This document shows, piece by piece, positions 21,258 through 44,339 of a stretch of 64,000 nucleotides of DNA. The DNA lies in assembly GCA_965637545.1 (NCBI GenBank), contig OZ281498.1, forward strand, positions 12,834,001-12,898,000, read 5' to 3'. The stretch is from Phallusia mammillata (Eukaryota). Under the pieces are notes generated by a model. The model was not told the origin of the DNA. It saw nothing but the letters and a program-made list of their open reading frames with translations, and searched no databases. Numbering within the stretch: the stretch's first letter is position 1; each line of letters begins with the position of its first letter. A program made the position numbers and the translations under genes.

Positions 21258-22343
21258 CGATTGATCTCATCGACTCAACTCAGGGACGCCGTTAATGGCG
21301 GCGATATCGCCGCGGAAGGGTGTTTGTCTAATGTCAGTCTTAGTTACTCCTTATCAAATCAGTGATAAACCTGCGTTTTGTCTGGCCAGCACAGAATCAC
21401 TGTGAAGGTCGAGAATTTATCTGTCCTTAAAGTATCGCAACGTTCCCGTCTCTGGTGTATTTTAATTCTGCCTATTTCCAAACGTCCTTACTTTTGACTT
21501 TGTATGTTTTTTGTATTCTTTTTACTTACCTGTGTAGTTTAACATTTTATCAGCCTTGCAAATCAAATTGTGTTTTGTGAGTAAAGTTTCATAATTTGTC
21601 CCTATCGCGTTATTTACACTGATGGTGTTTCGTACCGAGTATGTCTTCAATTTGATTTTTAAGATTAAAAGCAGTCGTTGTATTTGCATCAACCGGTTGT
21701 ATTTTGTACTGTGTGACACATTGCAATATTTGAATCGTTTCTTTTTTCATTATTTCTTATTGTTTGCAGCAAATATTTCCAGCAGGCGTTAGTCATCAAA
21801 CTTTTCGTTTCATTTCAACATGCTTGACATTTCCAATTAAAATTTGAAGCCTTTGACAACAGTTAGAATTGCCCGAACCCAGTAGAGAAAGCTATCTATT
21901 AGTTTTGAGACACCTTGACCAAAAAACAGCACGCAACGTTTACAAATCCTTTGCATGTCTTCTTTTGTCCATGTCTGTGGTTTGTAAGGTTAGGCAAGCA
22001 GTGGACGTATGGACGCCGCGCTAACGAAATGGGAGCCAGTCTCGGTTCATGAAAGAGCACTTTTTATCTTCCATAAGATACAGCTCGGCTCTAGAACAAA
22101 CTTTCACGGCCTAAAAAACGCTGATGAAGCTAACCGCGATACGGTCGGCGACACGCTCTTTTACAAGTGAAGCCAAGCAGAAATTGCTCGCAAAGCAACG
22201 ATTCTCTGCTGCAATGACTTGACAAAAACGCTGACTTCTTATTTTAAGTAGCCTTGCGAATTGAATTCTGGTTAAACTTACAAGTTTTTTAATTCGAATG
22301 TTTTTATTTTGTGCGTATTATAAGCTATTGGTGATCAAATAGA

Positions 22344-25300
22344 ATGGGTTTAAATACAAAAGTTGCGATTTCTGCATTTTTGTTGGTTTCCGTTTTGTCG
22401 TTGTGTGAGGCGAAAGATCGTGTGTATTTTCTCGCTATAAAAGAGATCATATGGGATTATGCGCCTTCAGGAATGAACTTGCTAACAGGCAACAAACTAG
22501 ACTATGAAAAGTAAGTTCTGTATTAAAGTTATAATTTGTTTTTGTTGCTTGTAAACATTATTCTTTTGAAGGATCCCTCGGATTTACAGTAACATGTACA
22601 TTGGAAAGAGGTATAAGAAAGCGGTGTACAGACGTTACACAGATAAAACGTTTCAAACTGAAATTCCTCATGATCCCAGCCTTGGGTTTATGGGGCCCAC
22701 AATACGATCGGAGGTAAGCACCAATCCACATCTGGTTTTATTTGTGGTGAGGTATTTTGGTATCTGTGTGCATTGTTTAGATTGGAGATAGGATCATTCT
22801 CCATTTGTTCAACAACGCATCAAAGATTTACTCTGCTCACCCGCACGGAGTCTTTTACACCAAATCCAACGAAGGTGCCAAGTATTTTGATAACAGCACA
22901 GACTCGGGCGATGATTCTGTGCCTCCCGGTGGACATTACACATACGAGTGGGAAGTTTTGGCCGAGTAAGTCAACCCATATCACTCATTATAAACAAGTG
23001 CAAGTAACTCCTTCAAAGGATAAAGAATTATCGAGACAAAATACATGTATATTTATGCGCAGGAAGCGAAATCCAACCGTTCAGGCACTCGTTTACTTTA
23101 CAGATACGGACCAGCCAGGGACGACCCAAACTGCCTTACATACATGTATCACTCTCACACTCATTCTCCAGTGGATATCAACTCTGGTCTAATCGGTGCC
23201 TTGCTCGTCTGCAGACAAGGTTATTAAAGTGTTTTAATGAAGTTTTCAAACAAAACATATTACTAATCCCTATACAAGCATATTTATTTATTAGCCACTA
23301 TTCAAGTATGAGTTATATTCGTTACAGGCACGTATCGAGAAGACGAAACGCGAACCGACGTTGATCACGAATTTGTTGCTCTGTTTTTTATTGCTCACGA
23401 GAGGGAAACTTGGTATTTCTGGGAAAATTTAGAGGTTGGCTATAAAATAAATGACTTTAAAATGTGGGCAAAGTCATTTACACCAACTTCAATCTGTTGA
23501 TAGATTTTCATGCCGGGGCAAACCGTTGACATTAATGAGCGGTATTTTCAAAAGGGAAACAAGATGCACGCAATTAATGGTTACATGTATAGCAACACAC
23601 CAGGTTATCAAGTTTGTCAAGGAGACACCATCAGTTGGCAAATGTTGGGCATGGGTTCAAACCGCGACCTTCACCCGATTACGTTTCAGGGTCAAACGGT
23701 GGGTTTTCAGGGTCAAATAAGATGCGTTGTTGCATAACGATTGTTACTGTGTGGTATTGACAATTGTAGATGCTCCATCAACATCACCGCAAGGACGCTT
23801 TTATAATGATTCCGGCGACATTGGCGACTGCAATCATGAAGGCGGATAACCCAGGGGTCTGGACAATAGCCTGCAAACTATACAGTCACTATACAGGTAA
23901 AACGCACTGTTGATGGCGTTTTCTAACATCTGTAAAACACTTTTTTGGAAAGCTAATATCTTCCTCAATATGTAACAGAGGGCATGATAGCGTTGCTGGA
24001 AGTAGACCCAGCTTGCAGAAAACCTACCTCACCACTGCCAGCCGAGAGTTTGACCGGTACTGTCCGAGAATACTTTGTTGCTGCCGAAGAGGTTTTGTGG
24101 GATTACGGACCAAATGGAGTTGATGGATTTACTGGGGAAAGTCTCACCGCTCCCGAGTCGTAAGGAAATTTTAGCTTCACACTTGCATATAATGAACATC
24201 ACCAGGCGTAAAAATTGTTTACACGTATGTGCAAGTGTGAAAAGTGTAAATTCCACAACTAAGCTTAAATGTTAAAAGAGATTATAATCCACAATAGTGG
24301 TGTGTAATTCATAAAAGATTATAATCCACTATAGTGGTGTGATAAAAAGGGAAAGGTAGCAAAAAAGTACATTAAAATATTGTTTAGAAATTCAGCTACA
24401 TTTTTTGAGCAAGGCTCAGACCGTATCGGTGGACTTTACAAGAAGGCGGTTTATCGCGGATACACAAATGCCAATTTTGACGTGCTAAGTCCACGTTCAG
24501 ATGACATGGGAATACTCGGACCAGTTATTGCAGCTGAAGTTGGTGACACAGTGAAGATTGTGTTCAAAAACAAAGCTACACAAAACGTAATTTCCAGTGC
24601 TTACTTACATTCTCTTTCAAAACAATGAAATTTAAATTGGCAAGTCCACTGAAAAAGTCGATTATGGTATAACTATAAATGTTACACATAAACAGCATAA
24701 AAAATGTGAGGTAATGAAATGAGCCAGTTTAAGGTTTTCCGACCAATGTATTTTATTGAAACCTTACATGAATAGCCCATTCTATTTGAATAACGTTTTT
24801 CTTTGCTAAAATCGTTTTATGTAGGCATTTAACATGGAGCCACACGGTGTATATTTTTCTGAAGCCAGTCCGGTTCTGCCACAAACGAAGCACACTTACA
24901 CCTGGTACGTCTTTCAGCCTTCTTTTTTTCTGTCGTCAGCTAAAAAGATAACACTTGTTTTACAGGACTTTGCCGGATACGGTTTCACCGGGTAAAAATG
25001 ACCCCAACTGCATCGCATTTGTTTACACATCTTCTGTAGAGTACATTTCCGACTCCAACGCTGGCCTTGCGGGGCCTATTCTGGTTTGCAAACGAGGTAA
25101 ACGGTTACTTTTACCTTATAAAAACAATAGATAATCATATTATTCCAAGCAAAAAGTTGTCAGTTTATGACCACCAGATTATATATGCCACTATAACACA
25201 TGACACTATAATAAATGATCTATATTCTAATTACTGTTTAAACTCGAGTTTTTTTTTGGAATTAGCAACACAAAACGTGACGGTTTTTATTTAAAAAAAA

Positions 25301-28300
25301 CCTTCCCATGACACAATAATTAAGCCGTTATGATGACATTTTCAATCACTACAGGAACACTGGCAAGAGAATTGGCAAAACGCAACAAGTTCGTATTGAT
25401 GACTGTATATGATGAAAACCAAAGCTGGTTTTTTGATGAAAACGTGAAAACTTTTACCTTGGATCCCTCTTCTGTCAACAAGAAGAGCGGAGATTTTAAA
25501 GAATCCAACAAGATGCATGGTAGAAGCTTATAGCCAGTCCACGGCACTCCAGTTTGTTGGAACTAACAGACTAAATAAATACCATAAACATTACTGCCAA
25601 GGTAGTGGTGTATATAGAATACATCGTGTAGACGTTTCGACAATCTCTGTTGTCATCATCAGTACATGTTTATGATGTCTACCTTGGCAGTAATGTTTAT
25701 GATTAAACTACTTTTCAAGTCCGTGCATAGTGTTCATAAATAAATACCATTTACATATAACTTGACAATGTATCGGCATACGTATCGCTTTAAAAATTAA
25801 TGCTAAAACTAATTACAGCTATCAACGGACGAATGTATGGAAATCTGGCAGACATAGATCTATGTACAGATGAGGACACCGTGGTTCACTTGCTTGCTGT
25901 CGGCACCAAAGTGGATATCCATGCTTTCAAGTTTGATGGGGTGAATGTCAAACTCAAGTATGTGCTTATACGTTGCCTAGTTTCTCTAGCTAAAGTAAAC
26001 GTGGCAGAGTTTGGTTTCACTTAATTCTTAATGCACTGAATGGTGTACAAAAATTATTTGTAACTTTATGCGTACATAAACACTTTATCATAGCTATGAA
26101 CGAAAATAATTTTTTGTGTATCTAAGTAATGTATCGCAAGCCAATTATTAAGTAGGCAACATTGTATTTGTAGTGGTGTGAGCACAGGAGCTGTTAACTT
26201 GTTCCCCCACATGTCACAAACAATAGTTGTCCGCCCTGAGCATGTTGGTTCAGGCATGATGTACTGCACACTCATTGAGCATGTGGCGTCCGGAATGACG
26301 GCGGTTTTCAACGTATGCAAAGATATAGTATATTTACATTTATTCAAATTCTATGTGCGTTTGAAATCTGTTCTTAATATTGGTTAGCGGAAAATTTAAA
26401 TTTTCGTCAAAACTGATGGTGATTGTTAATAATTGGGAGGTGTTTAGTATTTTTTAGATTTATACCCGATAAACATTTTTGATCACATATTTAACTGTAC
26501 CAGTCCAGAGTTTGCAACCCGGAATCAAGTGTTGAAGCTGCTGCTCATGTTGTTGCTGACGAAACGTCAACAGTCAGGAGGTATTACATCGCAGCAGAGG
26601 AGGTAATGTGGGATTACTCCCCAACTAGGATAAACATCGACCACGAATCTGTCGACATCGAAGGAAACCACGGCTACGATCACGCTCACAGGGAACTGGG
26701 AAAAACTATTGGTAAGACCCAATTATTACTTCACAGCGTTTAAATTTCACTTGGTAGATAAACTTGACTTGGCTGTCATTAGACAGCCGTTGATTCAAAC
26801 AAGTGGTACGCAACTTATACAGGCGTTGGTAAAATAAAAATTTGTGGTACTGTCGACAATGAGAAAATGGTTGCGAATGGGTCCTTTGTTTTAAACTGTC
26901 GTAATTTAACAGGTTCCATTTACAAGAAGGCGTTGTATTTCGAGTACACTGATGACACATTTACTGTTAAAAAGCCAAAGGCAACACATCTGGGTTTCCT
27001 TGGACCTGTTATCAAAGGCGAAGTCGGCGATCAAATTATGGTAGAAAACTGTTTTGACGTCTAAACATACAGCTCTTATCCAACCTACTTTTATCTTAAA
27101 GATAACGTTCCTTAACAAAGCGAATCGGGATTACAACATGCATCCATGGGGAGCAGTGGACCCTGATGCATATAACTTGGATACAGAGGCTGTCAAACCC
27201 GGACAACGAAAGCAGTATTCGTGGACTGTAATAATAATTTAACATTTTTTTCTAGTTTACAGAGTTTAAGATACAGTTTCTTTTGTAGATACCAGCGTCA
27301 GCCGGATCGACCGGGGAACAACCCAGCTGTTTGTCATTTATATATCTTTCAATTGTTGACAGACCTAATGACGCAACTGATGGACTAATGGGTCCACTTT
27401 TGGTGTGCAGAAAAGGTACGTTTGAGAAAGGGGATTAAAAACTGTCTATAACTGTGCAATGTGCAGTACGTTGGTGCACAGTGTTGGAATGGTTCGTAGT
27501 CCTTGCCGTTACTTTTGTGATAATAAAAGCGCTGGCAATTTTTGAAATGTACAATTTTATGCATATATATTGACCTGATTTTTGGTGACAGGTGGTTTGG
27601 ACAGCGGTGACGTCGATGAAGAATTTTTCCTACAGTTCCAAGTAGTTGATGAAAATCTCAGTCATTATATCGACGAAAATATTGACGAGTTTATCGGGGT
27701 TGAAGGATTTAATAAAGACAGCGGATCATTTGTCGAAAGCAATAAGATGAAAGGTATCAAGATGCAAAGATGACGAAACACCGAGTAGATATAAAGTTTA
27801 AAATAATGTTTTATTCTACAAATAAATCGAATGTGTATAGTATATGTAGAATATGTATAATTCTGCAATTTTTTTACACAACAAATTAGTGCTAAATGTT
27901 TTGAGCTGAACTTCCAAATTATTTCTTTCTCCTATTATATGAAACCCGTTGTTTGCTTGTTAACTATATTGTACGTCGAATTTTTTTAGCCATCAACGGT
28001 TTGCTCTCTCATGTCGATGGCCTAGTGATGCACAAAGACGATCGCGTTCGTTGGCATCTGATTGGCTGGGGTAATGAAAAGGACTATCATTCGGTCCATT
28101 TCCATGCACACACATATGTTTCCATGTAAGCATATCTACAATCTATATGCAAGTTTTTAGATAAAATACAAAAATAATTTGTTTGTTGAATTTAGAACTG
28201 ACGGAATTTATCGTGGTGACGTATTTGACGTGTTTCCTGGATTTTTCGGAACAGTGGAAATGAGAACTATAGCTCCCGGTGATTGGTTACTGCACTGTCA

Positions 28301-29133
28301 CGTGTTTGATCACATGCACGGAGGGATGGAAACCACATACAGTGTACTCGAAGACTCTCGTGCAGGTGACTTACCTATTTTTTTCAGAAAATAGTTGAAA
28401 ATTTTGTCCTTGTTAACAGTTAGAAACGAAAATACGTTGTTCGTACCCCAAAAAGTCAAAATACCAGATTTTTACATGTAGGAACACGTTTTTCTTTATT
28501 TGTTTGTTGAAATCACTTACTTAACAGCAATATTTCTATAGACTCAGACATATGAGTTGCTGTTGCAGATATATTTTTGAAAGTTCGAATATTGGTTACA
28601 AAATATTATTTTTTCTAGCAATCGGCAGTAACAGAACTCGTCAGCGTACATCTTGCGACGCCAGACAAGATGGTGAAAACTACATGTTAAGATGCAACAA
28701 CATGAACATCGCCAGAACCAGCGATCTCTTTCCAAGCACTAGATGGAGGTTAATGGCTAATGACGAAAGTGACAATAGCATTAAGATTTTGACAAGGAAA
28801 GTCACTTCGCTTGATCTAAGCTACAATAGTTTGACTGAACGTCAAGTAAGAAATTTGCTGATCAGGTTTCCCAACCTTAGAGTTCTAAAGCTGACTGGTA
28901 ACCCAATAAGAAAGCTTAGCAAGTATCTCATTATGCGCAACAAGCTGTTGAAAACCCTGGTTCTCCGTAACACGCCATCTTTTCAACGCATTACTAAGAA
29001 TTTCCTCCAGACCAAAACTGGCAATCGAGACTTTGACCTACTTGACTTTTCCAACAACCCACAGTTACAACCAGCCTGTCAAAGTCACTTATTCATGAAC
29101 ATGGACAGGCTTGTGGCTTGCCGTGATTCTTAA
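22344..29133 (+). CDS. HEPH: Six-domain ceruloplasmin/hephaestin-like multicopper oxidase, copy A, with predicted C-terminal LRR exon (22 exons)
   Basis: Signal peptide [23 protein letters not shown]. Exons 22344-22510, 22572-22713, 22781-22965, 23104-23219, 23328-23434, 23504-23698, 23770-23896, 23979-24159, 24388-24586, 24825-24904, 24966-25096, 25355-25519, 25819-25957, 26174-26312, 26504-26711, 26913-27040, 27102-27227, 27289-27415, 27592-27753, 27990-28125, 28196-28365, 28619-29133. Three WDYAP/WDYSP-YKKAVY-GPxIxxEVGD repeats. Cu ligands: [50 protein letters not shown]. The symbol indicates the family (CP/HEPH), not strict orthology. Confidence 0.93.
24279..24341. repeat. Short intronic tandem duplication, 37-bp period
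   Basis: AGATTATAATCCAC(A/T)ATAGTGGTGTG at 24279 and 24316. Confidence 0.8.
25583..25701. repeat. Perfect 23-bp inverted repeat enclosing the hammerhead motif
   Basis: CATAAACATTACTGCCAAGGTAG (25583-25605) and its exact reverse complement at 25679-25701. Confidence 0.9.
25625..25668 (-). ncRNA. Minimal type I hammerhead ribozyme (Penelope-like retroelement type)
   Basis: Minus strand reads CAUGUA-CUGAUGA-U-GACAA(CAGAGA)UUGUC-GAAA-CGUC-UACACG: catalytic core, 5-bp stem II, palindromic ACGU stem III, GUC cleavage triplet and a UGUA/UACA stem I. Confidence 0.75.
28619..29133 (+). CDS. LRR module exon (Cys N-cap, 4 LRRs, Cys C-cap), predicted last exon of oxidase copy A
   Basis: Repeats [46 protein letters not shown]. 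Acceptor ttttttctAG|CA is phase 1 and matches the phase-1 donor GCA G|GTGAC at 28365. Confidence 0.8.
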
Positions 29134-29275
29134 AGGTCTAAAAAGCGCATTGTAAGTTGTCACTAACTTTGTCGAAAATGGCATCATTATTAACCATGTA
29201 GAATACGCAGGTTCGTGAACAAATTAACAGACCGCTTGAATGTAGAAAATACTTAATGTCCGATATGAGCATATG

Positions 29276-29437
29276 CAGTGTTTTTTAAGGTGTTTTGGGG
29301 GACCGTTTCGGTCAAATTTCTCCAGCGGTTTCCCAAAATTTGGACTTGCAACTACAGTACTATTTTTGGTATTTAAATGAAACACTTGCGGTCTCTTAAA
29401 ACTACTTAGCGGTCACCCAAAACTTAAAAAAACGCTG
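29276..29437. mobile_element. hAT MITE of the same family as 6903-7059, between the convergent oxidase 3' ends
   Basis: Termini CAGTGTTTTTT...AAAAAAACGCTG; internal sequence is the reverse complement of 6903-7059 (GGGTGACCGCTAAGTAGTTTTAAGAGACCGCAAGTGTTTCATTTAAATACC); degenerate TSD AGCATATG/CTGATATG. Confidence 0.85.
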
Positions 29438-29609
29438 CTGATATGTTTCAACTGTACAAAAATATTTTAATTCAAGGTGAAATTTGAAGTAGTCTATACT
29501 CTAGTCTATGCTGGTATTGTGTTTGTCATTCTAGCTTTGCTTTACACGAAAAATATAGTTACTGGAACTTTATTAGTGATGTCTTTTTCAGCATTTTACA
29601 CTTACAGTT

Positions 29610-30148
29610 TTACTGCTGGATTTTCAAACATTGGTACAAGACGCGTTTGCGAAAAAATGCTTGATTAAGACACGATGGAAAGAGTTTAGGATTTTCAGAC
29701 AAATCCAACAAATTAAAATCAAAGTATGGGTTGTCTAAAACCAGTGACTTCGAAACGTAAAACAGGCTTGAGTTTTTAAGACTTAGTCGCTTTAAAAGCT
29801 TGTTGTCTGATATTAAGTTTCCAATAAGAAAATGAAGATTGTTGTTACTTAGGTCAAGGGAATACAGATTTTTAAATTTCGACAAAATTTCGCGACTTTC
29901 AAAATAATTGAACTGGTTGTTGCTTAAATCTAAGTGCCACACATCCCCTGGCGAGACAGAAAATGCTGATCCGTGAGGCAGACGAACTTTAAGTATCATA
30001 TTTTCGCCGAAGAGGTCAGTTGCTCTCTTTAAGTCCATTCCATCGCAAAGACAAATAAGCTTGCCTCCAATCTTCTTCATGTCGCAAACATCCCGTTTGG
30101 TTGCCGAACGGGACAACTTAGCTTGCGAAATTATCGCTGGTGTGATTT
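29610..30148 (-). CDS. LRR module exon, predicted last exon of oxidase copy B
   Basis: Repeats [45 protein letters not shown], with flanking Cys (VCDMKK..LICLCD; PSCL..YQCL). Acceptor ttttttatttAG|AA is phase 1 and matches the donor at 30280. Confidence 0.8.
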
Positions 30149-33100
30149 CTAAATAAAAAATATTCACAAAATAGAGTAACATTTTAGTTTAAACTCTTTT
30201 TTACCACCAAAGATATTTCAAAAAAACATCAAGAATGTCTAACCAAATGTTATGGAGCTCATTCGCCAGAATTTCCTACCTTTTTCCAGCACAATATACG
30301 TAGTTTCCATTCCCGCTTGGATGTGTTCAAACACGTGACAATGTAACAGCCATTCACCGACTGCTACCGTTTCCATGTCAACGGTGCCGAAAAATCCAGG
30401 AAAAACATCGAACACGTCTCCACGATACGATCCGTCGGTTCTAAGAAATGTTGCGAAAATGTGTTTACAAGGACATAGAAACGCACTAAAACAAAATAAC
30501 ATTTTCCGAGAGCTGTACTCTGGGGTTACTCCGGTACTCCTAATGTAACTTACAATACGAAATGTGAGATAGGGATGAACATTACAAATTGCACAAACAA
30601 GCGTTCCTAGAATATTACCCGTCTTTTGAAACTAGATGTTATATTGCAAATTAAATTTGCGTATTCCCACTACACGTCAAGCTCCATTTAAGTGACGAGA
30701 CACTTGACTCGATATCCTGTGGATTTTTTTTTTGCTTTAACGAAACCGTTTCGCAACGACAAATTTAAAAAGGGGGCATTGCAAATAAACCTTGACTTAA
30801 CTCAAACAAATCGTCGGGTCCCATAGGTCTCATAAGTATATTTAAAACTTGTAGAAACGCCAAAAATAACAGAACATTTGCATGGGCAAACTCATAAAAT
30901 CACAGATAAGGATTAGCTAATAAACGAAATTTAGAAAGAGATATATAGAATGAATTTATGATACTTACATTAGTCGGAACGTGTGTGCATGGAAATGGAC
31001 AGAATGATAATCTTTTTCGTTGCCCCAGCCAATTAAATGCCACCGCACGATGTCGTCTTTGAGCATTGTCAAGCCGTCGACGTGAAATAAATATCCGTTT
31101 ATAGCTAAACAGTAGAACAAACATTACAAATTTTGTATTTTTTGAAACGTTTTCAAACAGATACGTACTCTTCATTTTGTTGCTTTCAACAAACAATGCA
31201 CTTTTCTTGTTAAACTCCTCTGGATCCGCACCGATGTATTTCTGAATATTTTCGTTCAAGTAATGACTCGTGTTTTCGTCAACAATGTGGAACAGGAGAA
31301 AGAATTCGTTGTCTATTTCCATGGTATCATAAGCACCTTAGAAAAACAGGGAAAGTACAAATTTTAATCGAATTTACTTTTCAATCAAATGATATCAATG
31401 TTTTTTTTTTACCAGAAAGCTTTTGCGAATTTTAAGTTAAAATGAACCAGGATGGAACTTTTTAGGTTTAATGTGAAAATTACCTGGTTTGCAAACCACC
31501 AGGGGACCCAATAAACCATCAGCTGTATCAGCTGACCTATCAACTGATGACACATATATAAATGACAAGCAGCTGGGCTGATTTCCAGTAGGTGAAGCCG
31601 ATTCCGGGATCTGCGGAGTTTAAACGCATATGTGTGAAAGCATATGAAGTAAACACATTTGAAAAACAAGCAAAATGATATTACAACGATTAACTTTTTC
31701 TGAAAAGTCTTTTGGCTATAGTTTAGTGAGTACTTACTTTCCAGATATATAACTTTTTCTTGCCAGGATCCACAGAGTTTTTTCCCATCTCATATGACTC
31801 AGGATCAATTGCACCCCATGGATGCATATTGTATGGTCGATTCGCTTTGTTCCAAAACAAAATCTACAAGTAGCAAGGAGTGTAAGGCACTCATGCAATA
31901 ATTTGCCTTCGTTGGCTAAATGTAAATTAAGGACAAAAAAGCATACCCTTATCGTATCACCAACTTCGCCCCTAATGGCCGGCCCCAGTATTCCGAAATG
32001 GTCAGGTTTTGACAGTTTCACAGTGTATGTGTCATCTGTGTACTCAAAGTACAGCACTTTTTGGTATTTGGAACCTACAAAAACATTCTTTTTATTGTAG
32101 AACACACAGTAAAGTTATACTAGCCGCTTTCTCACCTATAGTTTTTCCAGGTTGCCTGTGTAGATGAGTGTAGCCGTAATTTTCTTTCTCGTGTATTGAT
32201 TGACCTTTCAAGTTAACCTCAGAGGGATTGTAATCCCATGTTACCTCTTCAGCCGCGATGTAATATTGCCGTACAGTAGATTTTTTAACTATTTCACTGT
32301 CTTCTTCATCGGAAACAACTGAACTGTTGCAGTTTTTCGCCTTAAAACATAAAGCGTGTGGTTAAATTGAGATCGTTGCAGAAGCATACAATACTTCTTA
32401 TCCACCCCAGCCATAGTTCGGTGACGTATCTCATGCAATGTTTGCCCATTATTTGCATCAAACCAAAAGCAGGTAGTGTACATGAGCAGAAATGCAAATG
32501 CCATGAATATTGAGTAAGCATATGTTGCTCATTAGTCATGTTTAACTTTTTTTCTTAACCTGCTTTTTCCTACCGTGTAAATTGCGAAGAGGCCTGACTT
32601 GATATGATCCATTAGGCTACAGAAAACCAATCCTTTTCCAACTTCATCAGCACGAACATTTACGGTTTGAGATGTGTGAGCAAAAAGGTTGATCGCACCC
32701 GTACTTATACCGCTACAAAAAGATCGAATTAGCAACATAAATCACATTTTACGTGGTTTATAAAATGGATTGCATACTTAATTTTAACGTTGATTCCATC
32801 GAACTTAATAGCATGAATGTCATATTTGGTACCGACAGCAAACAGGTGAAATATCGTGTCCTGGTCTGTGCAGACCTCAAGGTTGTTCAGGTTTCCAAAC
32901 GATAACCCGTTAAGCGCTGCAAAACAAAACGTCGGATTAGCCCACCCTATAGAATTGCACTATAGACCCGTATTGCCTTGGGTTTGTAAGAGTCATGAAC
33001 CTAAAACGAATTTCCATAGAGCCAGGTTTCGCTATACGTATCGACTCTGATACATTCGTTAACTAGGACGTTTAATGTCAAAGCGGTTTTACAATTGGTA

Positions 33101-36100
33101 GGTGTCAAAAGATATGTCTGACCTAACAATTGATTTTTTAAAATAAACATTGGCCCATGGGACTGATAAAATATTGTTACCATAATTTTGAAATCAATAG
33201 TGAAACTTACAATGCATCATGTTTGACTCGGTAGGTGGATTTTTCGTGACGGGCTGTGTCATGAAAGTTTTCATATTTTCATTAAAATACCAACTGTTTT
33301 GTTCTTCAAAGATTGTCACAAGAAGATATTTGTGGCGTTTGGCCATTTCAGAAACCATCGTGCCTAAAAAGACAAAACCTGTTGATAATCTTTCAAAATT
33401 TTGATTTAGGTCATGGACAAACCTTTTTTGCAAACTACCAAAGGACCAACAAGCCCCGCGTTTGAGTCGGCCACGTATTCCAACGACGATGTGTATAAGT
33501 AAGTTATGCAATTGGGATCATTTTCACCTGGTGACACTGAGTCAGGAAGAGTCCTTTTTGAACATAAACACGTTTGATGTAGTTAATTTCTATTGTGTAT
33601 CAACATAATAAAAACATCTGCTTCAAGCTTTCTCGTTTGCAAACATCAAATACATAACAAACCACAAAATAATAACACAAGTGTTGCACGAGTTTTTTTC
33701 TGAAATATCTTACCAGGTGTATGTGTGTTTCTGACCAGGGAGAACAGCATTGGCTTCGGCAAAATACACTCCTTGTGGTTCAAGGTTAAACGCCTGTAAT
33801 TGCGTCACAAGTTGTATGTGTGCATCTAGTTGGCTTTATTTAGCATCGGTACTTGCGTAGAACAAACAATTGCATTTTTCGCGACTGTATTTAGAACATT
33901 ACCTTTCCATTCTCCTTTGATTCATGTGCCGGGTTTCGCCACAGTAAGGTGTATTGTTGGGTAAAGAATACGTACCAAGCCCTTTCTTAAATAAATCAGG
34001 GCGTTGTTTTTATTTTTACATGTTTTCTAAAATGGGGATTGAAAACTTTCCCACTTGTTTCTAAATTAAACGCGATGTACTTGATAGGGGCCATTGTCAT
34101 GATTTCGTCCCTAAATAACTATATTTTTCGCTTCTAGCAATTTTAAGCAAGCAATGCTTACGTGTTTTGCAGCTTTGTTTTTGAACAGAACCTTTAGGGT
34201 ATCGCCAACTTCAGCTATGATTGGCGGACCAAGAATTCCCATGTCCGCAGTCCGCTCACTTTTTACTGTAAAGTTTCCGTTTTCGTAACCTCGATAAACC
34301 GCTTTCTTGTAAACACCACCGATAGCGCTACCATCGGTCTTAAAGTAAGTAGATGAGTCACTGAAACAAAGAACAAGTTTTATTCCTATTTGTCAACAGG
34401 AATTGTGGATATTACGTTGGCATAAATTCTTAAAGTTAAGGTAGTAACTAGTGATGCACCGAACCCGCCTAAAAAGGTTCGGGCGGAAACCGAATATTCG
34501 GCCACGAGGCCGAATAATTTCGGCCGAATTAGGCCGAACCTAAAATCCCCGTTTATATGAATGTTGCCAACTGAACCTTGTGTCGTTGATGCGAGTGAAG
34601 TGAATTATGATAAATCAAAATCACTTTCACAATGCGGAAGTTTTACTAAACTTGTAATATTTTGTAGACAATGTGGCTCGTATTTTATAAACACAACAAT
34701 TAGTTAATTTATTACGTTTCGTATAGGCGAAAATGATAGTTTAGGCATTAATTCAATGCAATCAAAAAGTTCGGTTTCGGCCGAATTTTAGAAAAAAGTT
34801 CCGGCCGAAACCGAAACATCGAAAAACAGCGTATTCGGCCGAAATGTTTCGGCCAACCGAAACTTCGGTGCATCACTAGTAGTAACGTTTCAAACAAAAA
34901 AATGTTCCACGCCCACACAAAAAGAGTTTTACCTGCCATTAGCGTCGAGTCGTTCACCGGTAAGTTGATTTACATTGCTCGGTGCATAATTCCACCAAAC
35001 CTCCTCCGCTGCTATAAAGTATTCACGAGTTTTTCCTGTCAGACTGTCCGACGGAACTGAGGCGTTTGGCTTTTGACACGTTGGATCCACGTACATTAAC
35101 GCCGTCATTCCCTCTGAAATCAAGTTGATGGATCCTTATTATGTATAACTGGCCATGTATTAAAGGTTTGTCTTCACAATATAGCAAGATCCTATATTCC
35201 AAATAACCCCAGGGAGTAAACTTGGTTTGGGAAGGCAGAACACCTCTCCAATCCCTGCCCATATTGTTTTTTTCGTTGCCAAAGAGGGCTATTTTTCGTT
35301 ATATATGGCGTCATAGACAATGCTTTGATCAGGTCTGTCGTTTTTTGTTATGACGCCAAATAAATCCCTTTTGAAGTTAATTCTGGCATTAATTTGCAAA
35401 GTAGAGCCGATGAAGTACTTGATTTATGGCAATCGTCCTGTGTTGTCTTAAATTGTCAAAACCTGTGTAATGGCTGTATAACTTGCAGGCGATGATCCAT
35501 CTGCCGGGGTTATCGGCTTTCATAATTGCTGTCGCAAACGTTGCTGGAATTGCGATCATCGCATCCATACGATGGTGATGTTTCAAAACCTTAAATAATT
35601 TGAAAACGTTTACAAATCTTACGTATCTTTGTCAAAGTGCGGCTTTGTCCAAATACATTACAAAAAGTAAAAATCATAATTCACATATTTAGTTGTTTAC
35701 ATATTTAGGATTAAAAAAAACACGTTTGAAAAAAATGTGCTGGTTGTCGTTCCTACCGTTTGCCCTTGAAACTGAATTGGGTGCAAATCTCTATTCGATC
35801 CCATTCCAATGATATGCCAGCTGATCGTGTCTCCCTGACATACGTCGTAGCCTGGGGTGTTACCGTACATGAATCCATTTACCGTGTGCATTTTGTTGCC
35901 CTTTACAAACAGCTTATCGTTGAGATCAAATCCTTCGTCAAGATTGTTCATCTGAAAGAGAAACACCGGTTTTTAAGTTTTGTTGAGTGGGTCACATCTA
36001 ATTTGTTTCAGATGTTTAACTATTGTTTTACGTTTTAGTCGTTACTGCAACTCTGCAGTCGGTATTAGGGTGAAGGTTGAAGAAATGGCGTTGACTGCGT

Positions 36101-37231
36101 TGGTTAGAACCAATAAGTTGGTGCAAACTAACAACAAGCTTATAGACAAATGCAGTTGCACAAAAAAATCCCAACGTGATGGTGAAAACGGGAGTTGTAC
36201 TCACCCGCATGTTTTCCCAGAAGTACGAGCTTTCCCGCTCGTGGGGTATAAAGAACATCGCAACGAATTCGTGGTCGACATCCCTTCGTGTTTCGTCGTC
36301 TTTGTAAGTTCCTGTGTAGCGCCATTGTCAAATACTGATTCATATTGCCAAAACAAAATGTTTTGTTTGTAAATAAAATCGAACCTGGGTTACAAACTAT
36401 GATGGCCCCGATAAGACCGGCATGGACGTCGATCGTTGAGTCGGAATGGGAATGATAAGCCCAAGTTAAGCAATTTGGATCGTCCGGTGTTGGTCCGAAC
36501 CTTTAATAAATGATTTTGAAATCTTAAGTTATACTACAATTATGTAAATGGCCGTTGCTGCTCAGAAAAACCAACAAATACGTTACAAACATTGTAAAAA
36601 CTTACTCTTTAACAACTTCCCAAACGTAAGTATGTTCTCCGCCTGGCTGAACGCTGCTGCCTGGACCATTGGTTTTGTTGATGCCATAATTTGCACCTTC
36701 GTTGTTTTTGGTGTAAAATACGCCGTGAGGGTGGATTGAATAGTTTTTTGACGCATTGTTGAAAAGGTGCACAATAATGCGATCCCCGGTCTACATCAAA
36801 ACTCATTTAGAATTAAGGTAAGGGGGGCTATACAACACGTTTTTAAAGATATGTACTGACCTCAACCCTCATCGTAGGGCCCATAAACCCTAAGTTTGGG
36901 TCGCGCGGTGCTTCCGTTTGAAACGAGCTGTTGGTGTATTCCCTATACACCGCCTTTTTGTAGGTCTTTCCCAAAAACATGTTACTGTATATGTTCGATA
37001 TCCTGCAAGAACACAAGAAAATATTTTTCACCTTAACAATAATTTACAACAGCAAACTAAGAAGCATTGTCCTTACTTTTCGTGCGAGAGCCTATTTCCT
37101 GTGATGATATTCAAATCAGATGGGGCGTAATCCCACATAATCTCTTTGATTGCAAGATAATATGTTTTGTCTTTTGCGGCACAGCTTCCTGCAAGTATCA
37201 TCAATAGGGCACTAAAAACAACTCGCCCCAT
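29610..37231 (-). CDS. HEPH: Six-domain ceruloplasmin/hephaestin-like multicopper oxidase, copy B, with predicted C-terminal LRR exon
   Basis: ATG at 37231, signal peptide [19 protein letters not shown] then [18 protein letters not shown]. The exon series, intron positions and phases match copy A. Ligands: [50 protein letters not shown]. No frameshift or internal stop was found when the exons were joined. The last oxidase exon ends at 30280 (AAA G|GTAGG). Confidence 0.92.
34449..34878. mobile_element. Non-autonomous hAT (Ac-like) MITE in an intron of oxidase copy B
   Basis: TIR TAGTGATGCACCGAA...TTCGGTGCATCACTA; perfect 8-bp TSD GTAGTAAC (34441-34448 and 34879-34886); GGCCGAA/TTCGGCC subterminal repeats. 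Confidence 0.92.
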
Positions 37232-41437: not shown

Positions 41438-44339
41438 TCATGTGTCAGTTGAAGATTTTAATAGTGTATTTTGGCATTCGTCTCCGGTTGGTTTCAAGCG
41501 CAGAGCTTTCAGTATTTTGCGCAAACGCACCGAACAAATTCGACGACAGCGTTTGTTCCACAGTCCTTCTTTTCTCTGGAAAAGGCGCAACTGGTCTGAA
41601 ACACAACGAGACAAATAATGATATTTGAACACACGTACCGGAATTCGGTTATTTTACATGGCTATTCCTACGGTAAACGTAGACGTGTAGCATGTCTTGC
41701 ATTGTACAAGGCAATTTTAATAAATGTTAGCCACTTACTACGACCATGATATCAATAATTTGCTGTCATATCATTTCTAAGATTGTTATACCATTTCTAA
41801 GTTTACAATTAACTTACATTCGCTGGTGTAGCCAATGGGCTGAAAGACGCCACGTAACCGTTTTTCTTCTGCAAAGCGCTCGTATGTGCTTTGTCGCAAA
41901 GTAAGAACTTCCCGTTGTTTTAGGTCTGGTTGACAGAAAAGATCAAATTTACTTGGAGATGACATCGCTACAACAAGAGCTTGAATAGCTCAAAACGGTA
42001 TTGTTTGATATTACAAGTTTAAATCTGTCTTTAAGGGAATTGACAATATTGTACCAGGAAGTTAAACAAATACAATTAGTAGTTAAGTAACTTCTCTCAC
42101 ACATGTGTAATTTAATTCGAAATAACAGACTGGATCAAACTTCATACCTGTATTGATAGACCAGTTGTAAATACGAACTGAAGTGGGCAAATGAACTGCC
42201 AACACATTATCAAAATGCTCAGTGCTGTTATGTTTATCCACAGAAGATGTGTTTCCAATCGTGTTCACAAATTGATAAACTGCTATACACGACGTCTTGT
42301 TATCCATGTTATTTTCTTGTACCCTTTTTAGAGACTTGTGTGTTGTTTCGCAACGTGGGCAGCAACGATTTTTCTCTGGGCTTTCGCAGGTTTCTTGGGA
42401 ACGTACAATGTCACATTTGGGCATTTTGCACTTTACTTCACCGTTCTGTCAACAAGCAAAAATCGGTAAAGATGTTGCACAATAACCCAAACGTCAAATG
42501 TAGGCTATTGTTGTTTGCGATGGGTCGAGCTACTAACACAAGAACTCACAGCAGAAAAGGTTTGCTAAATACGGATAGGTGGCGTACCGCAGTTATTTAA
42601 ATTAACATTACGACTGCATGGTTAGGGACTAATTTAACAAAAAGCTCTGGATTTTTAGATTGATGTTATTTCTATTATTGTTATGAAACCTCATACTAAC
42701 CCTAATAGCCCTAAACGTCAGCATTTTTTACACAAACTGCATTTAACATATTTGAGCGCGCCACCTACCGGAATTTAGCAAACCCGTCTGCTGTAAGTAC
42801 TGGTGTTAATAGCTCTACCTTTGCGATCTTTAAACAGATCAAAATATACCATTTTTTTCACTAAACCTCCAGGACTGATAGGTGTGGAAATGCTAAATAG
42901 GTTGAGAACTATAATAATCACATGCCGAAAAAGACGCCAGGGGGTGCTACAACATTATTGGTGATTTTAAATAGCTCAGAGTTCGAGCTCGTGAAAAAAA
43001 AACTTGATTCCATTGCAGTTGTTGCATGAATTTTTAGCTTAATTTTTGTTTGTTCTACGTTCTAAGTTTCCTAATTCCATAAACAACAGTTTGTTTTGTA
43101 TTAGGCCTAGTCCACGCAAATCATATAAAAACTGATGTTTATGTTAATCTTACCTCACAACTGCATTCTATGCATATTTTCTTGTTTGCTTGCGGCAGTT
43201 CTGCCTTCCATGTGTCGCCACTTCTATGATCTTTGCCCGCAAACGTACAAAATTGGTTCGGATTCAAACTGTCTTTTGTTAAAGTCTGCATAAAAGGATG
43301 TCTTATGTCGCCCCCAGGTAAACGATTTTCAGTTTTGGGAATTTGCAAGCCTCCATCGACTTGAACCGGAAAGTTGGGCATGGTTCTATCGGTACAAACT
43401 GGGCAACAATCCTTGTCTGTAAAATCCGGTTGAGGACAAGCAATGGGTAGGCACAATTTAGTGCGACAGTAAGTTTCACCAGCCTGTTGATATAAAATAG
43501 TTAGAAACATTAGCATTATTCCACGTTTCTTCCGCTGGGTGGACTGCTGAGACAGGCGTCGGTTTGATTTGATTAATTTTTCGTAACGACATAAGTAGGA
43601 TATATGTGCTAACCGTAAGCATTTTAAAATCATCTAAAAAACAAGCTATCGCTTACCACACAAGCACATTGTCTGCATACGCTTCGGTCAAGGGAAATCT
43701 GTTGATAATTTTTCCCAGAAAACGTTTCACCGTGTCTGTGGTAAACCCCATTCTCGAAACAAACCGAGTTTTTTCTCGGTACGGCAGATCCCACATTTTC
43801 ATTATCTGTTGGCCACCCACCACTGTTCGTCGAAACCTTAAAACTAAAAAGGTTTGGATGTTTCTCAGTTTGACCAGTTACGCCAATACCCTCTGAACTT
43901 GCAGTATGACCATACATTGCAGTTGATTCACACCTCTTGCACTTTGTGTTTCCCTGGACAAACCAACATGCTGTTTTAAAACAAGGTAGGGTATGTAAAC
44001 CTCATTTATATAAAAGCACGTATACCCTACCATTTTGCAAACGCAGGTCAAACAGAGGTTTTTAGCCAAACCCGTGTTGATCGGACTCCACATCTCACCG
44101 TTGTTGCGAACTATTCCGTTCATTACACAACTCGACACGCCTAAAGTTACAAAATGTGTTAAGTAAGCCTACATCAGTTATTGTTGTCAGTAAGTTACAA
44201 AATTAGAGTCACCATTATTTATTCAAAGATCGGAGTGCATGCAATGTTTACCTGTAGGATAGCCACTGGTTTTCAACGTTAATCCAAGTATAAAACACAT
44301 TGCTTCGAGACAGTGAGTTAAACTATGAGCAGAAAGCAT
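41438..44339 (-). CDS. CHRDL: Chordin-like protein (signal peptide, 3 VWC/CR repeats, CHRDL1/2-type C-terminal domain), 7 exons
   Basis: Exons 44339-44252, 44140-44031, 43953-43657, 43483-43154, 42445-42148, 41925-41818, 41595-41438. VWC2 CFENG..CRQCACVAGETYC..CCPVC; VWC3 CTFAG..CIECSCENGEVKC..CCPRC. The tail VRIYNWSINTDLKQ..RCRRICSVRLRKILKALRL resembles the CHRDL1/2 C-terminal domain (VEVHVWTIRKG..CSSRVCRTELEDLVKVL). Confidence 0.82.

Follow-up and report, generated by a model that had tools for sequence, protein, structure and literature searches.

The question raised by this locus is whether a six-domain copper oxidase can carry an LRR module as its C-terminal tail. Enzymes of this type are textbook components of iron metabolism; whether they are secreted, carry a GPI anchor or have a transmembrane helix determines where they reside. 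We analyzed a stretch of 64 kb from the ascidian Phallusia mammillata, here called the window, which contains two convergent, intact copper oxidase genes of 22 exons each, encoding 1220 aa (+ gene) and 1216 aa (- gene). Our main reading, to which we assign a probability of roughly 0.7, is that both genes specify secreted six-domain oxidases with a Cys-capped LRR last exon and that this tail would have a docking or targeting role. Each gene would thus encode a multicopper oxidase of the ceruloplasmin/hephaestin family extended by an LRR module of about 170–180 aa.

Structure of the two oxidase genes

In both paralogues an uninterrupted ORF comprised a hydrophobic signal peptide, six cupredoxin domains with copper ligands and, at the end, the LRR exon (Table 1). 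This last exon of approximately 170–180 aa is attached via a phase-1 intron exactly where ceruloplasmin ends. The two proteins were 58.7% identical over 1222 columns, the exons were collinear and the splice sites were located at matching positions. The earlier note had described phase-1 donors at 28365 (+) and 30280 (-), each followed by an LRR exon, and every one of these sequence features was found. Its bounds of the last copper exon hold for the + gene, whereas the outer bound of 30460 proposed for the - gene lies about 20 nt inside the intron and the exon runs from 30440 to 30280.

Table 1. Features of the two oxidase genes and their surroundings in the window
Feature	Coordinates	Strand	Remarks
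+ gene exons 1–21, signal peptide and six cupredoxin domains	22344..28365	+	ATG 22344; joined exons encode 1220 aa in one ORF, the only stop being terminal
+ gene exons 1–7	22344-22510, 22572-22713, 22781-22965, 23104-23219, 23328-23434, 23504-23698, 23770-23896	+	
+ gene exons 8–14	23979-24159, 24388-24586, 24825-24904, 24966-25096, 25355-25519, 25819-25957, 26174-26312	+	
+ gene exons 15–21	26504-26711, 26913-27058, 27102-27227, 27289-27415, 27592-27753, 27990-28125, 28196-28365	+	
Part of intron 19 included in the abundant 5'-truncated transcript	27833..27989	+	contigs of X1, X9, X17
+ gene last copper exon	28196..28365	+	phase-1 donor cag/GTGACT after 28365
+ gene intron 21	28366..28618	+	253 nt, GT..AG, phase 1; skipped in contigs of X1, X5, X9, X17
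+ gene terminal LRR exon	28619..29133	+	Cys N-cap, about 4–5 LRRs, Cys C-cap; 170 full codons and stop
High-copy repeat between the two genes, in or just past the + gene 3'UTR	29265..29415	.	RNA contig depth 700–900, many loose ends
gene terminal LRR exon	29610..30148	-	stop 29612-29610; 179-codon ORF intact, all four Cys kept
gene last copper exon	30280..30440	-	phase-1 donor aag/GTAGGA after 30280
gene exons 1–21, signal peptide and six cupredoxin domains	30280..37231	-	ATG 37231-37229; 1216-aa ORF from Met

The LRR exon of the + gene is preceded by the acceptor ttttttctag/CA before 28619 and ends with a stop codon at 29131–29133, the 3'UTR extending to at least 29340. Read-through of the donor would terminate with ...GDLPIFFRK and a stop at 28392–94. 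In the - gene the last intron (30279–30149, 131 nt, phase 1) ends with the acceptor ttttttatttag/AA before 30148, and read-through of the donor would terminate with ...ITFG and a stop. The high-copy repeat situated between the genes is no part of the oxidase-LRR fusion.

The six cupredoxin domains were made up of three tandem A-type repeats (31–33% identical, E 1e-56 to 1e-58). The repeat start R.Y[FY].A..E..WDY.P was located at aa 26, 376 and 716 of the + protein and at aa 22, 372 and 707 of the - protein. Both proteins contained the copper motifs HPH, HSH, HFH and HCH, and type-1 sites of the form C-x4-H-x4-M were present in domains 2, 4 and 6 (that of domain 6 being the HCH motif), with Leu replacing Met in domain 4 of the - gene. 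Exon 19 matched ceruloplasmin with E 1e-15 to 1e-18. Residues 1–87 of P0001, a public product of the + gene described below, aligned with human ceruloplasmin 974–1060 of 1065 (E 5e-52), which was the best match among solved structures; the tail therefore begins where ceruloplasmin stops. Judged by sequence, both genes can be assigned to the six-domain multicopper oxidase (ceruloplasmin/hephaestin) family.

In ferroxidases the residues that bind iron are found close to two type-1 sites, those of domain 4 and of domain 6 (human E935/H940/D1025 and E597/H602/D684/E971). In the ESNKMH segment of domain 6 the E of ESNKM was kept and the iron-site His was replaced by Lys in both paralogues. At the position equivalent to D1025 the + gene has D and the - gene E; both have kept E971, and ESNKMH of domain 4 was kept in the + gene.

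Fold and conservation of the LRR exon

The LRR exons of both genes are homologous, as had been claimed: they shared 33% identity (BLASTP E 1e-20), compared to approximately 63% for the oxidase bodies, and four Cys were conserved. Neither exon has a signal peptide or a Met of its own, yet the four conserved Cys are typical of secreted LRR caps. Pfam matches of the + exon were LRR_4 with 22.3 bits (E 1.6e-4) and LRR_8 with 20.7 bits, both below the gathering score of 27; those of the - exon reached 10–13 bits (E 0.1–0.7), below the gathering threshold as well. Precomputed LRR_8 hits were carried by the relatives P0022, P0029 and P0083.

AF2 models of the exons had a mean pLDDT of 90.9 and a pTM of 0.87 (+) and a mean pLDDT of 88.8 and a pTM of 0.83 (-) with the same fold. 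In VIA-align the predicted + tail matched extracellular capped LRRs with Z 11.7–12.5 and an rmsd of 2–3 A over 108–128 residues, the neighbours at Z ~12 being the TLR3 N-terminus, VLRs, Slit2 D4, GPIb-alpha, LGR5 and NgR; Foldseek matches of the predicted tail to such proteins had E 5e-4 to 5e-3. The tail of both genes is thus predicted with high confidence to fold as a Cys-capped extracellular LRR module. With small modules of this kind (Slit2 D4, lamprey and hagfish VLRs, the GPIb-alpha N-domain, the TLR3 N-terminus and the amphioxus VLR-like Bf66946) the predicted tail has in common an LRRNT-like beta-hairpin cap with two Cys, parallel rungs and a C-terminal helical cap with two Cys. However, Slit2 D4, VLRs, GPIb-alpha, TLR3 and Bf66946 share only 15–25% identity with it, and none of them is attached to an oxidase.

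The N-cap pair C12/C25 (numbering of the + copy) was kept in all eight sequences that cover the N-cap, P0083 starting after it, and the second C-cap pair C153/C167 was invariant in 9 of 9 aligned sequences. These paired cap cysteines, predicted to form disulfides, would imply passage through the secretory pathway. The C-termini ...LVACRDS and ...LYQCLKIQQ end 3–5 residues past the last cap Cys, and a hydrophobic stretch indicating a transmembrane helix or a GPI signal was not present at the C-terminus of either predicted protein. Discoidin (F5/8 type C) domains were not found in the tail, which matched LRR families only (Pfam) and LRR folds (structure searches).

The earlier note had proposed looking for the linkage in related genomes, and the same layout of copper exon, phase-1 donor, phase-1 acceptor and LRR exon was present at five further loci, which belong to at least four additional marine genomes. 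At each of the seven loci examined (W+, W-, L008, L003, L005, L006 and L007) a phase-1 donor was located 8–11 codons past GM(E/Q)T.Y, and the acceptor after it, likewise phase-1, had a pyrimidine tract. Locus L005 has also kept the tail-to-tail gene pair, and its orthologue of the - gene LRR exon encodes a 59% identical protein with the same splice phases. In P0152, a Tara-derived gene prediction, the LRR N-cap directly follows domain 5/6. For the LRR exon, dN/dS was ~0.24–0.28 in the two comparisons with estimable dS. This indicates purifying selection on the LRR exons, whose ORF and four Cys have been preserved in at least five genomes. Phase-1 exon shuffling is the probable origin of the exon, and its gain would predate both the duplication of the paralogues and the split of several related marine, presumably tunicate, lineages.

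Transcripts across the junction

The joint 28365 to 28619 (GT..AG) of the + gene was found in RNA contigs of four runs from four studies (X1, X5, X9 and X17), given by the tool as 28363 to 28617 with 'cut +2'. Further joints of this gene were 27227 to 27289 and 28125 to 28196, and an RNA contig spanned 28617–29340. The product of the + gene is already public as a 260-aa 'hephaestin-like' protein (NCBI CAB3252517.1, UniRef A0A6F9DEX9, here P0001). It contains the predicted junction peptide ...LEDSRAAIGSNR... and reads ...VLEDSRAAIGSNR... across the Cu-LRR junction. Like the + gene it has the last two copper exons spliced to the LRR exon, with one residue difference in the compared stretch; unlike the full + gene it is a 5'-truncated ORF from an internal Met, for which only Cu-oxidase_2 is precomputed. 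The splice proposed for both genes is consequently in use in the + gene, whereas the - gene yielded unspliced low-depth RNA only: for its joint 30280 to 30148 no spliced RNA was found, and contigs 29888–30176 and 30220–30720 (depth 4–8) run across the splice sites.

The six-domain oxidase with an LRR tail is supported by the ORFs, but the + gene RNA seen was a 5'-truncated transcript and not a six-domain mRNA. The contigs of X1, X9 and X17 (1244, 1244 and 1179 nt) start at 27833, preceded by 24–59 nt foreign to the window, and the contig of X5 starts at 27937. RNA depth was 0–6 on the upstream oxidase exons versus 6–90 on the 3' unit. The joint of exon 19 (end 27753) with exon 20 (start 27990) was present in no RNA contig, and no RNA read linked the LRR exon with the oxidase exons upstream. 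The intron 19 sequence 27833–27989 closes the frame upstream, so that P0001 starts at ATG 28027. Given the truncated contigs, the low upstream depth and the missing joint, the only documented LRR-containing RNA cannot encode the secreted oxidase. Since the abundant transcript is 5'-truncated, no read makes that connection and the - gene RNA is unspliced, the full-length fusion mRNA (exons 1–19 with the LRR exon) is something that we strongly infer rather than observe.

These data could also mean that the LRR exon is used mainly or only in a separate short transcript, begun inside intron 19 or at an unplaced alternative first exon, and that the oxidase ends otherwise. Such RNA would hold only the last two copper exons and the LRR exon and would be a non-productive or non-coding by-product or give a cytosolic half-cupredoxin-LRR protein. 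The contig starts within intron sequence, the depth and the missing joint agree with this, as do a TATAAAG at 27790–27796 (37–43 nt upstream of 27833), the start of P0001 exactly at the first in-frame ATG left once the intron is retained, and its 260-aa ORF, the longest, which lacks a signal peptide and lies behind several upstream ATGs. Nevertheless, we regard it as unlikely. Disulfide caps cannot form in a product without a signal peptide, but both the ORF and its four Cys are conserved under purifying selection. The phase-1 donor right after the copper motif is conserved at all loci, which matters only if the copper exon is translated into the LRR exon. Moreover, both full-length ORFs are undisturbed and include a signal peptide, and AATAAA was not seen in intron 21, read by eye, to give the oxidase another end. 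Assuming that the sampled RNA is, as is probable, embryonic, low full-length expression there proves little.

Less likely still is the reading that the RNA contigs, together with the NCBI entry, stem from a nearly identical copy of the 3' end elsewhere in the genome (a partial duplicate or a retrocopy) whose breakpoint lies at 27833, and would thus tell nothing about the locus in the window. The 24–59 nt preceding this position were absent from the whole 64-kb window when searched at up to 3 mismatches, no AG directly precedes 27833, and all four runs differ from the window at the same two sites (28851 A>G and 28869 T>C). However, alleles of one locus would equally give 99.8% identity, a haplotype indel in the intron accounts for the loose end equally well, and the linkage at the + locus is conserved in other species. 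Furthermore, a retrocopy must descend from an mRNA spliced from 28365 to 28619, so the junction itself stands.

It is just as improbable that the - gene LRR exon is an unused duplication relic and that only the + gene makes a tailed protein: besides the unseen joint, the read-through contigs and the weak Pfam matches there is an intact ORF with all four Cys, a donor, acceptor and phase that are conserved in the L005 orthologue, and a well-predicted common fold, and expression of the - gene as a whole is so low in these runs that missing joints are uninformative.

In public databases the + junction is named hephaestin-like or ferroxidase and the LRR tail is unremarked. A full-length (~1200 aa) Cu-oxidase and LRR protein was recovered neither by an exhaustive profile search of 1.84 billion representatives nor from the ESM Atlas, so that the complete architecture is not backed by an independent gene model. 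The literature search found no paper mentioning an LRR tail on these oxidases. The truncated public ORF at the + locus, with no full-length model found, constitutes a practical annotation problem.

Possible role of the tail

Returning to the secreted, LRR-tailed oxidases as the preferred reading, the tail can be compared with the C-termini of known family members. Ceruloplasmin (PDB 1KCW, 2J5W, 4ENZ) is, like both predicted gene products, secreted and built of six cupredoxin domains from three A repeats, with trinuclear-cluster His motifs in domains 1 and 6 and type-1 Cu in 2, 4 and 6. It ends 5 residues past the aligned block, or gains a GPI anchor by alternative splicing, whereas in the Phallusia genes a phase-1 intron leads to the LRR module. 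Hephaestin and HEPHL1 (zyklopen) share the six-domain family and an extension after domain 6, which in vertebrate hephaestin is a single transmembrane helix; the Phallusia extension is instead a predicted soluble LRR domain. Factors V and VIII, which were among the PDB sequence matches (E 1e-18 to 1e-30), combine an A1-A2-A3 core of the same family with acquired C-terminal binding modules. These are discoidin C1-C2 domains, to which a B domain is added, and little copper chemistry is left in the core; the Phallusia proteins have an LRR module instead and retain all Cu ligands. Factors V and VIII, in which appended binding domains re-aim the same scaffold, are a precedent for targeting it in this way.

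An LRR tail was not seen elsewhere on this enzyme family, and its probable function is to dock the secreted enzyme onto a partner. Our preference is for docking or targeting as a substitute for a membrane anchor: on the predicted fold, the tail may be a protein- or glycan-binding module that would cause the oxidase to dimerise or would keep it at, or direct it to, a partner on the cell surface or in the matrix, and so take over the job done in vertebrates by the hephaestin helix or the ceruloplasmin GPI anchor.

The pattern-recognition-coupled oxidation or matrix cross-linking suggested earlier finds support only in the fold class of the tail. It is doubtful that the tail is a specific VLR/TLR-like recognition module aiming oxidising activity at a defined ligand, perhaps the surface of a microbe, a component of the tunic or matrix, or a cell-surface partner that handles metals. 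If so, it would represent a tunicate 'recognition-coupled oxidase' without counterpart in other animals, and the fast-diverging tails of the paralogues would recognise different targets.

Tunicates are known for unusual metal handling. In sea squirts and related marine genomes, where the LRR tail has been preserved by selection, it would offer a third means of positioning the enzyme, and the tail could be used as bait for the role of these oxidases in tunicates.

Gene models of the two convergent oxidases

The two ceruloplasmin/hephaestin-type oxidase genes, located on the plus (22344-29133) and on the minus strand (37231-29610), were compared strand against strand. This gave 22 collinear exon blocks (+ 22335-29130, - 37252-29613), with splice sites at identical positions in both copies. 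After joining of the exons each gene contained one uninterrupted ORF, of 1220 aa (+) and of 1216 aa counted from Met (-), respectively, and the two paralogues were 58.7% identical overall. Both proteins started with a hydrophobic, signal-like N-terminus and contained three A-type repeats (31-33% identical, E ~1e-57), which results in six cupredoxin domains. Each protein also has three type-1 sites and, for the trinuclear cluster, the His pairs HPH, HSH, HFH and HCH. A leucine-rich repeat (LRR) tail formed the C-terminal part of both joined ORFs, and a hydrophobic C-terminus was present in neither protein.

Reading of the window sequence confirmed, on both strands, the exon and junction coordinates proposed in the earlier note. 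The start of the tail was also placed relative to ceruloplasmin by means of P0001, a public Phallusia mammillata protein of 260 aa. Its residues 1-87 align with residues 974-1060 of the 1065 residues of human ceruloplasmin (E 5e-52), thus the tail begins where ceruloplasmin ends.

Features at the 3' ends and the iron site of the two oxidase genes (window coordinates; in sequences the slash marks the splice site)
Feature	Position or length	Strand	Remarks
Plus-strand gene, last copper exon	28196-28365	+	bears final copper motif; phase-1 donor cag/GTGACT
Plus-strand gene, last intron	253 nt	+	followed by phase-1 acceptor ttttttctag/CA
Plus-strand gene, LRR exon	28619-29133	+	ORF exon opened by phase-1 acceptor
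Minus-strand gene, last copper exon	30440-30280	-	bears final copper motif; phase-1 donor aag/GTAGGA
Minus-strand gene, last intron	131 nt	-	followed by acceptor ttttttatttag/AA
Minus-strand gene, LRR exon	30148-29610	-	opened by acceptor
Domain-6 iron-site motif	27741-27753 / 27990 (+); 31181-31169 / 31104 (-)	+ and -	end of exon 19 / start of exon 20

Where ceruloplasmin has ESNKMH in domain 6, both paralogues have ESNKMK, with Lys in place of His. In domain 4, ESNKMH is kept in the plus-strand gene, and Leu replaces the axial Met in the minus-strand gene. With Lys at the domain-6 His position in both proteins and the domain-4 site kept in the plus-strand gene, the two oxidases can be called ferroxidases only tentatively.

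Fold and relatives of the LRR tail

The two tail exons are homologous, as the earlier note had proposed (33% identity, BLASTP E 1e-20), and four Cys are conserved between them. Pfam LRR_4 and LRR_8 matched the plus-strand tail with E ~1e-4 and 22 bits, which is under the gathering score of 27; the matches on the minus-strand tail were weaker. AlphaFold2 models built with a nine-sequence alignment reached a pLDDT of 90.9 and a pTM of 0.87 for the plus-strand tail and 88.8 and 0.83, respectively, for the minus-strand tail. Using Foldseek and VIA-align, the plus-strand model grouped with extracellular capped LRRs (Z 11-12.5, rmsd 2-3 Å, 108-130 residues). Its structural neighbours were the TLR3 N-terminus, lamprey/hagfish VLRs, Slit2 D4 and GPIb-alpha as well as LGR5, the Nogo receptor, Slitrk1 and amphioxus Bf66946. 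According to the models the tail is a small module consisting of an LRRNT-like cap, approximately 4-5 LRRs and an LRRCT-like cap.

A profile of both tail exons was searched against 1.84 billion representative proteins, whose clustering at 50% identity could hide a member. The best match was P0001 (NCBI CAB3252517.1 / UniRef A0A6F9DEX9), which is annotated as 'hephaestin-like protein / ferroxidase' and assigns the window to this ascidian or a very close relative. This record is a truncated ORF with Cu-oxidase_2 as the sole precomputed domain, and in this form the junction is already public. Tail-profile relatives from single stretches were short ORF calls only (P0001-3, 6, 16, 22, 29 and 83). 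A homologue search with P0001 among proteins of 143-455 aa resulted in three matches, including the Tara-derived gene prediction P0152 (310 aa), in which domain 5/6 is followed by the copper motif and the LRR N-cap.

The search for Cu-oxidase plus LRR architectures suggested in the earlier note returned no full-length example: the 1.84 billion representatives contained no tailed oxidase of ~1200 aa, and no cluster of the ESM Atlas combined the two families. No full-length tailed model was therefore found in the searched databases, nor did the literature search yield a paper describing an LRR-tailed six-domain oxidase. The six-domain protein table of Vasin et al. 2013 (PMC3600357) includes the Ciona intestinalis proteins XP_002119762.1 (1670 aa) and XP_002122537.1 (1434 aa). 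Judged by these table entries, both greatly exceed the length of an oxidase with six domains and might contain extra domains or represent merged models.

The relatives of the tail exon were short ORF calls on contigs of other marine genomes. In every locus that was long enough to be judged (L008, L003, L005, L006 and L007) the LRR exon lay downstream of a last copper exon, with both on one strand. In all of them the donor, of phase 1, lies 8-11 codons past GM(E/Q)T.Y and the acceptor, likewise of phase 1, is preceded by a pyrimidine tract; the introns between both exons ranged in size from 131 to 1517 nt across loci. L001, L002, L009-L011, L013 and L014 share a sequence family with L008. All four cysteines of the caps and the asparagines of the LRRs were kept in the nine sequences with the exception of P0083, which starts after the N-cap. 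Where dS was measurable, dN/dS was ~0.24-0.28; dS was saturated in most pairs.

In the contig L005 (Logan DRR090687) a second LRR exon is additionally represented by its end (1623-1706, minus strand), ~540 nt beyond the first and on the opposite strand, compared to a tail-to-tail spacing of 476 nt in the window. The tail-to-tail gene pair is therefore older than the split from that species. As a control, metagenome contigs were scanned with an alignment of the copper exon. Among the 80 loci obtained only two more had an LRR exon, both from the same species as L008. The LRR exon was absent in the copper-exon relatives L016, L018, L019 and L024, each with 1.7-5.5 kb of downstream sequence.

Transcripts across the junctions and status of the LRR exon

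Logan contigs of four sequencing runs from four studies (X1, X5, X9 and X17) were compared with window positions 27000-31500. They were taken as RNA because the assemblies were small (14-30 Mb), most intron and intergenic sequence was absent and GT..AG joints were present. The joint 28365->28619 was found in all four runs (28363->28617 in the aligner output, cut shifted by +2), as was the joint 28125->28196, and P0001 reads ...VLEDSRAAIGSNR... across the junction. The splice into the LRR exon, which had been claimed for both oxidases, is thus real in the plus-strand gene; for the minus-strand gene these runs gave it no RNA support.

The contig bearing the joint (1244 nt in X1 and X9, 1179 nt in X17) covers 27833-28125, 28196-28365 and 28619-29340. 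It retains 157 nt of intron 19 (27833-27989; the canonical exon starts at 27990), preceded by 24-59 nt (...CTGCTGGATGAGCAATACTTGGTC) foreign to the window. The retained piece closes the frame upstream and the first in-frame ATG, at 28027, is the start of P0001. The plus-strand RNA on record is therefore a 5'-truncated transcript. Its depth was 90, 21, 57 and 6 across the four runs, and that of the upstream oxidase exons 0-6. A spliced joint further upstream (27227->27289) was found in X17 only, and none of the contigs of the four runs carried the joint of exon 19 to exon 20 (27753->27990). From these data the LRR exon could belong for the most part to a short transcript that lacks a signal peptide or is non-coding, which we consider unlikely given the need of such a module for secretory entry discussed below.

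The 59-nt loose end had no match in the 64-kb window at up to 3 mismatches. An ascidian spliced leader was rejected as its source, the piece being too long and no AG preceding 27833, and an AT-AC intron was rejected as well. A TATAAAG is located at 27790-27796, and the truncated transcript may result from an intronic start plus a haplotype indel. Alternatively, it may originate from a near-identical partial copy elsewhere. That the RNA derives from such a partial duplicate or a retrocopy seems quite improbable to us, and the junction stands even then.

In the region of the minus-strand gene, contigs of low depth (4-8; 29888-30176 and 30220-30720) ran through both splice sites and are therefore unspliced; spliced RNA at this junction was found in none of the four runs. 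The tail of this gene could accordingly be read as an unused relic, a view to which we give little credence.

We would rather hold, with a probability of roughly 0.7, that the coding sequence of each oxidase gene truly ends in the LRR exon. An LRR with putative disulfide caps and no signal peptide of its own can be maintained by selection only when it enters the secretory pathway behind the oxidase. Moreover, the conserved phase-1 donor directly behind the copper motif serves nothing else, and no AATAAA for an alternative 3' end was seen on reading intron 21 of the plus-strand gene. Whereas the vertebrate relatives are anchored by a transmembrane helix or GPI, the Phallusia mammillata oxidases would carry the LRR tail in its place. 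The tail would take over from this anchoring and most likely dock, target or dimerise the secreted oxidase. It would represent a domain that a well-known enzyme gained in a restricted lineage.

Other features of the window

Pfam searches with the other large ORFs of the window gave no match of note; the longest ORF (980-2101, plus strand, 373 aa) was without Pfam match. An ORF of 164 aa on the minus strand (43142-43633) had a weak match to the VWC domain below threshold (E 1.7e-4) and may form part of a nearby gene for a secreted protein, as one of its exons. Between the two oxidase genes, at 29265-29415, RNA contigs reached a depth of 700-900 with many different loose ends, and this segment looks like a high-copy SINE/MITE-like repeat transcribed in many contexts.
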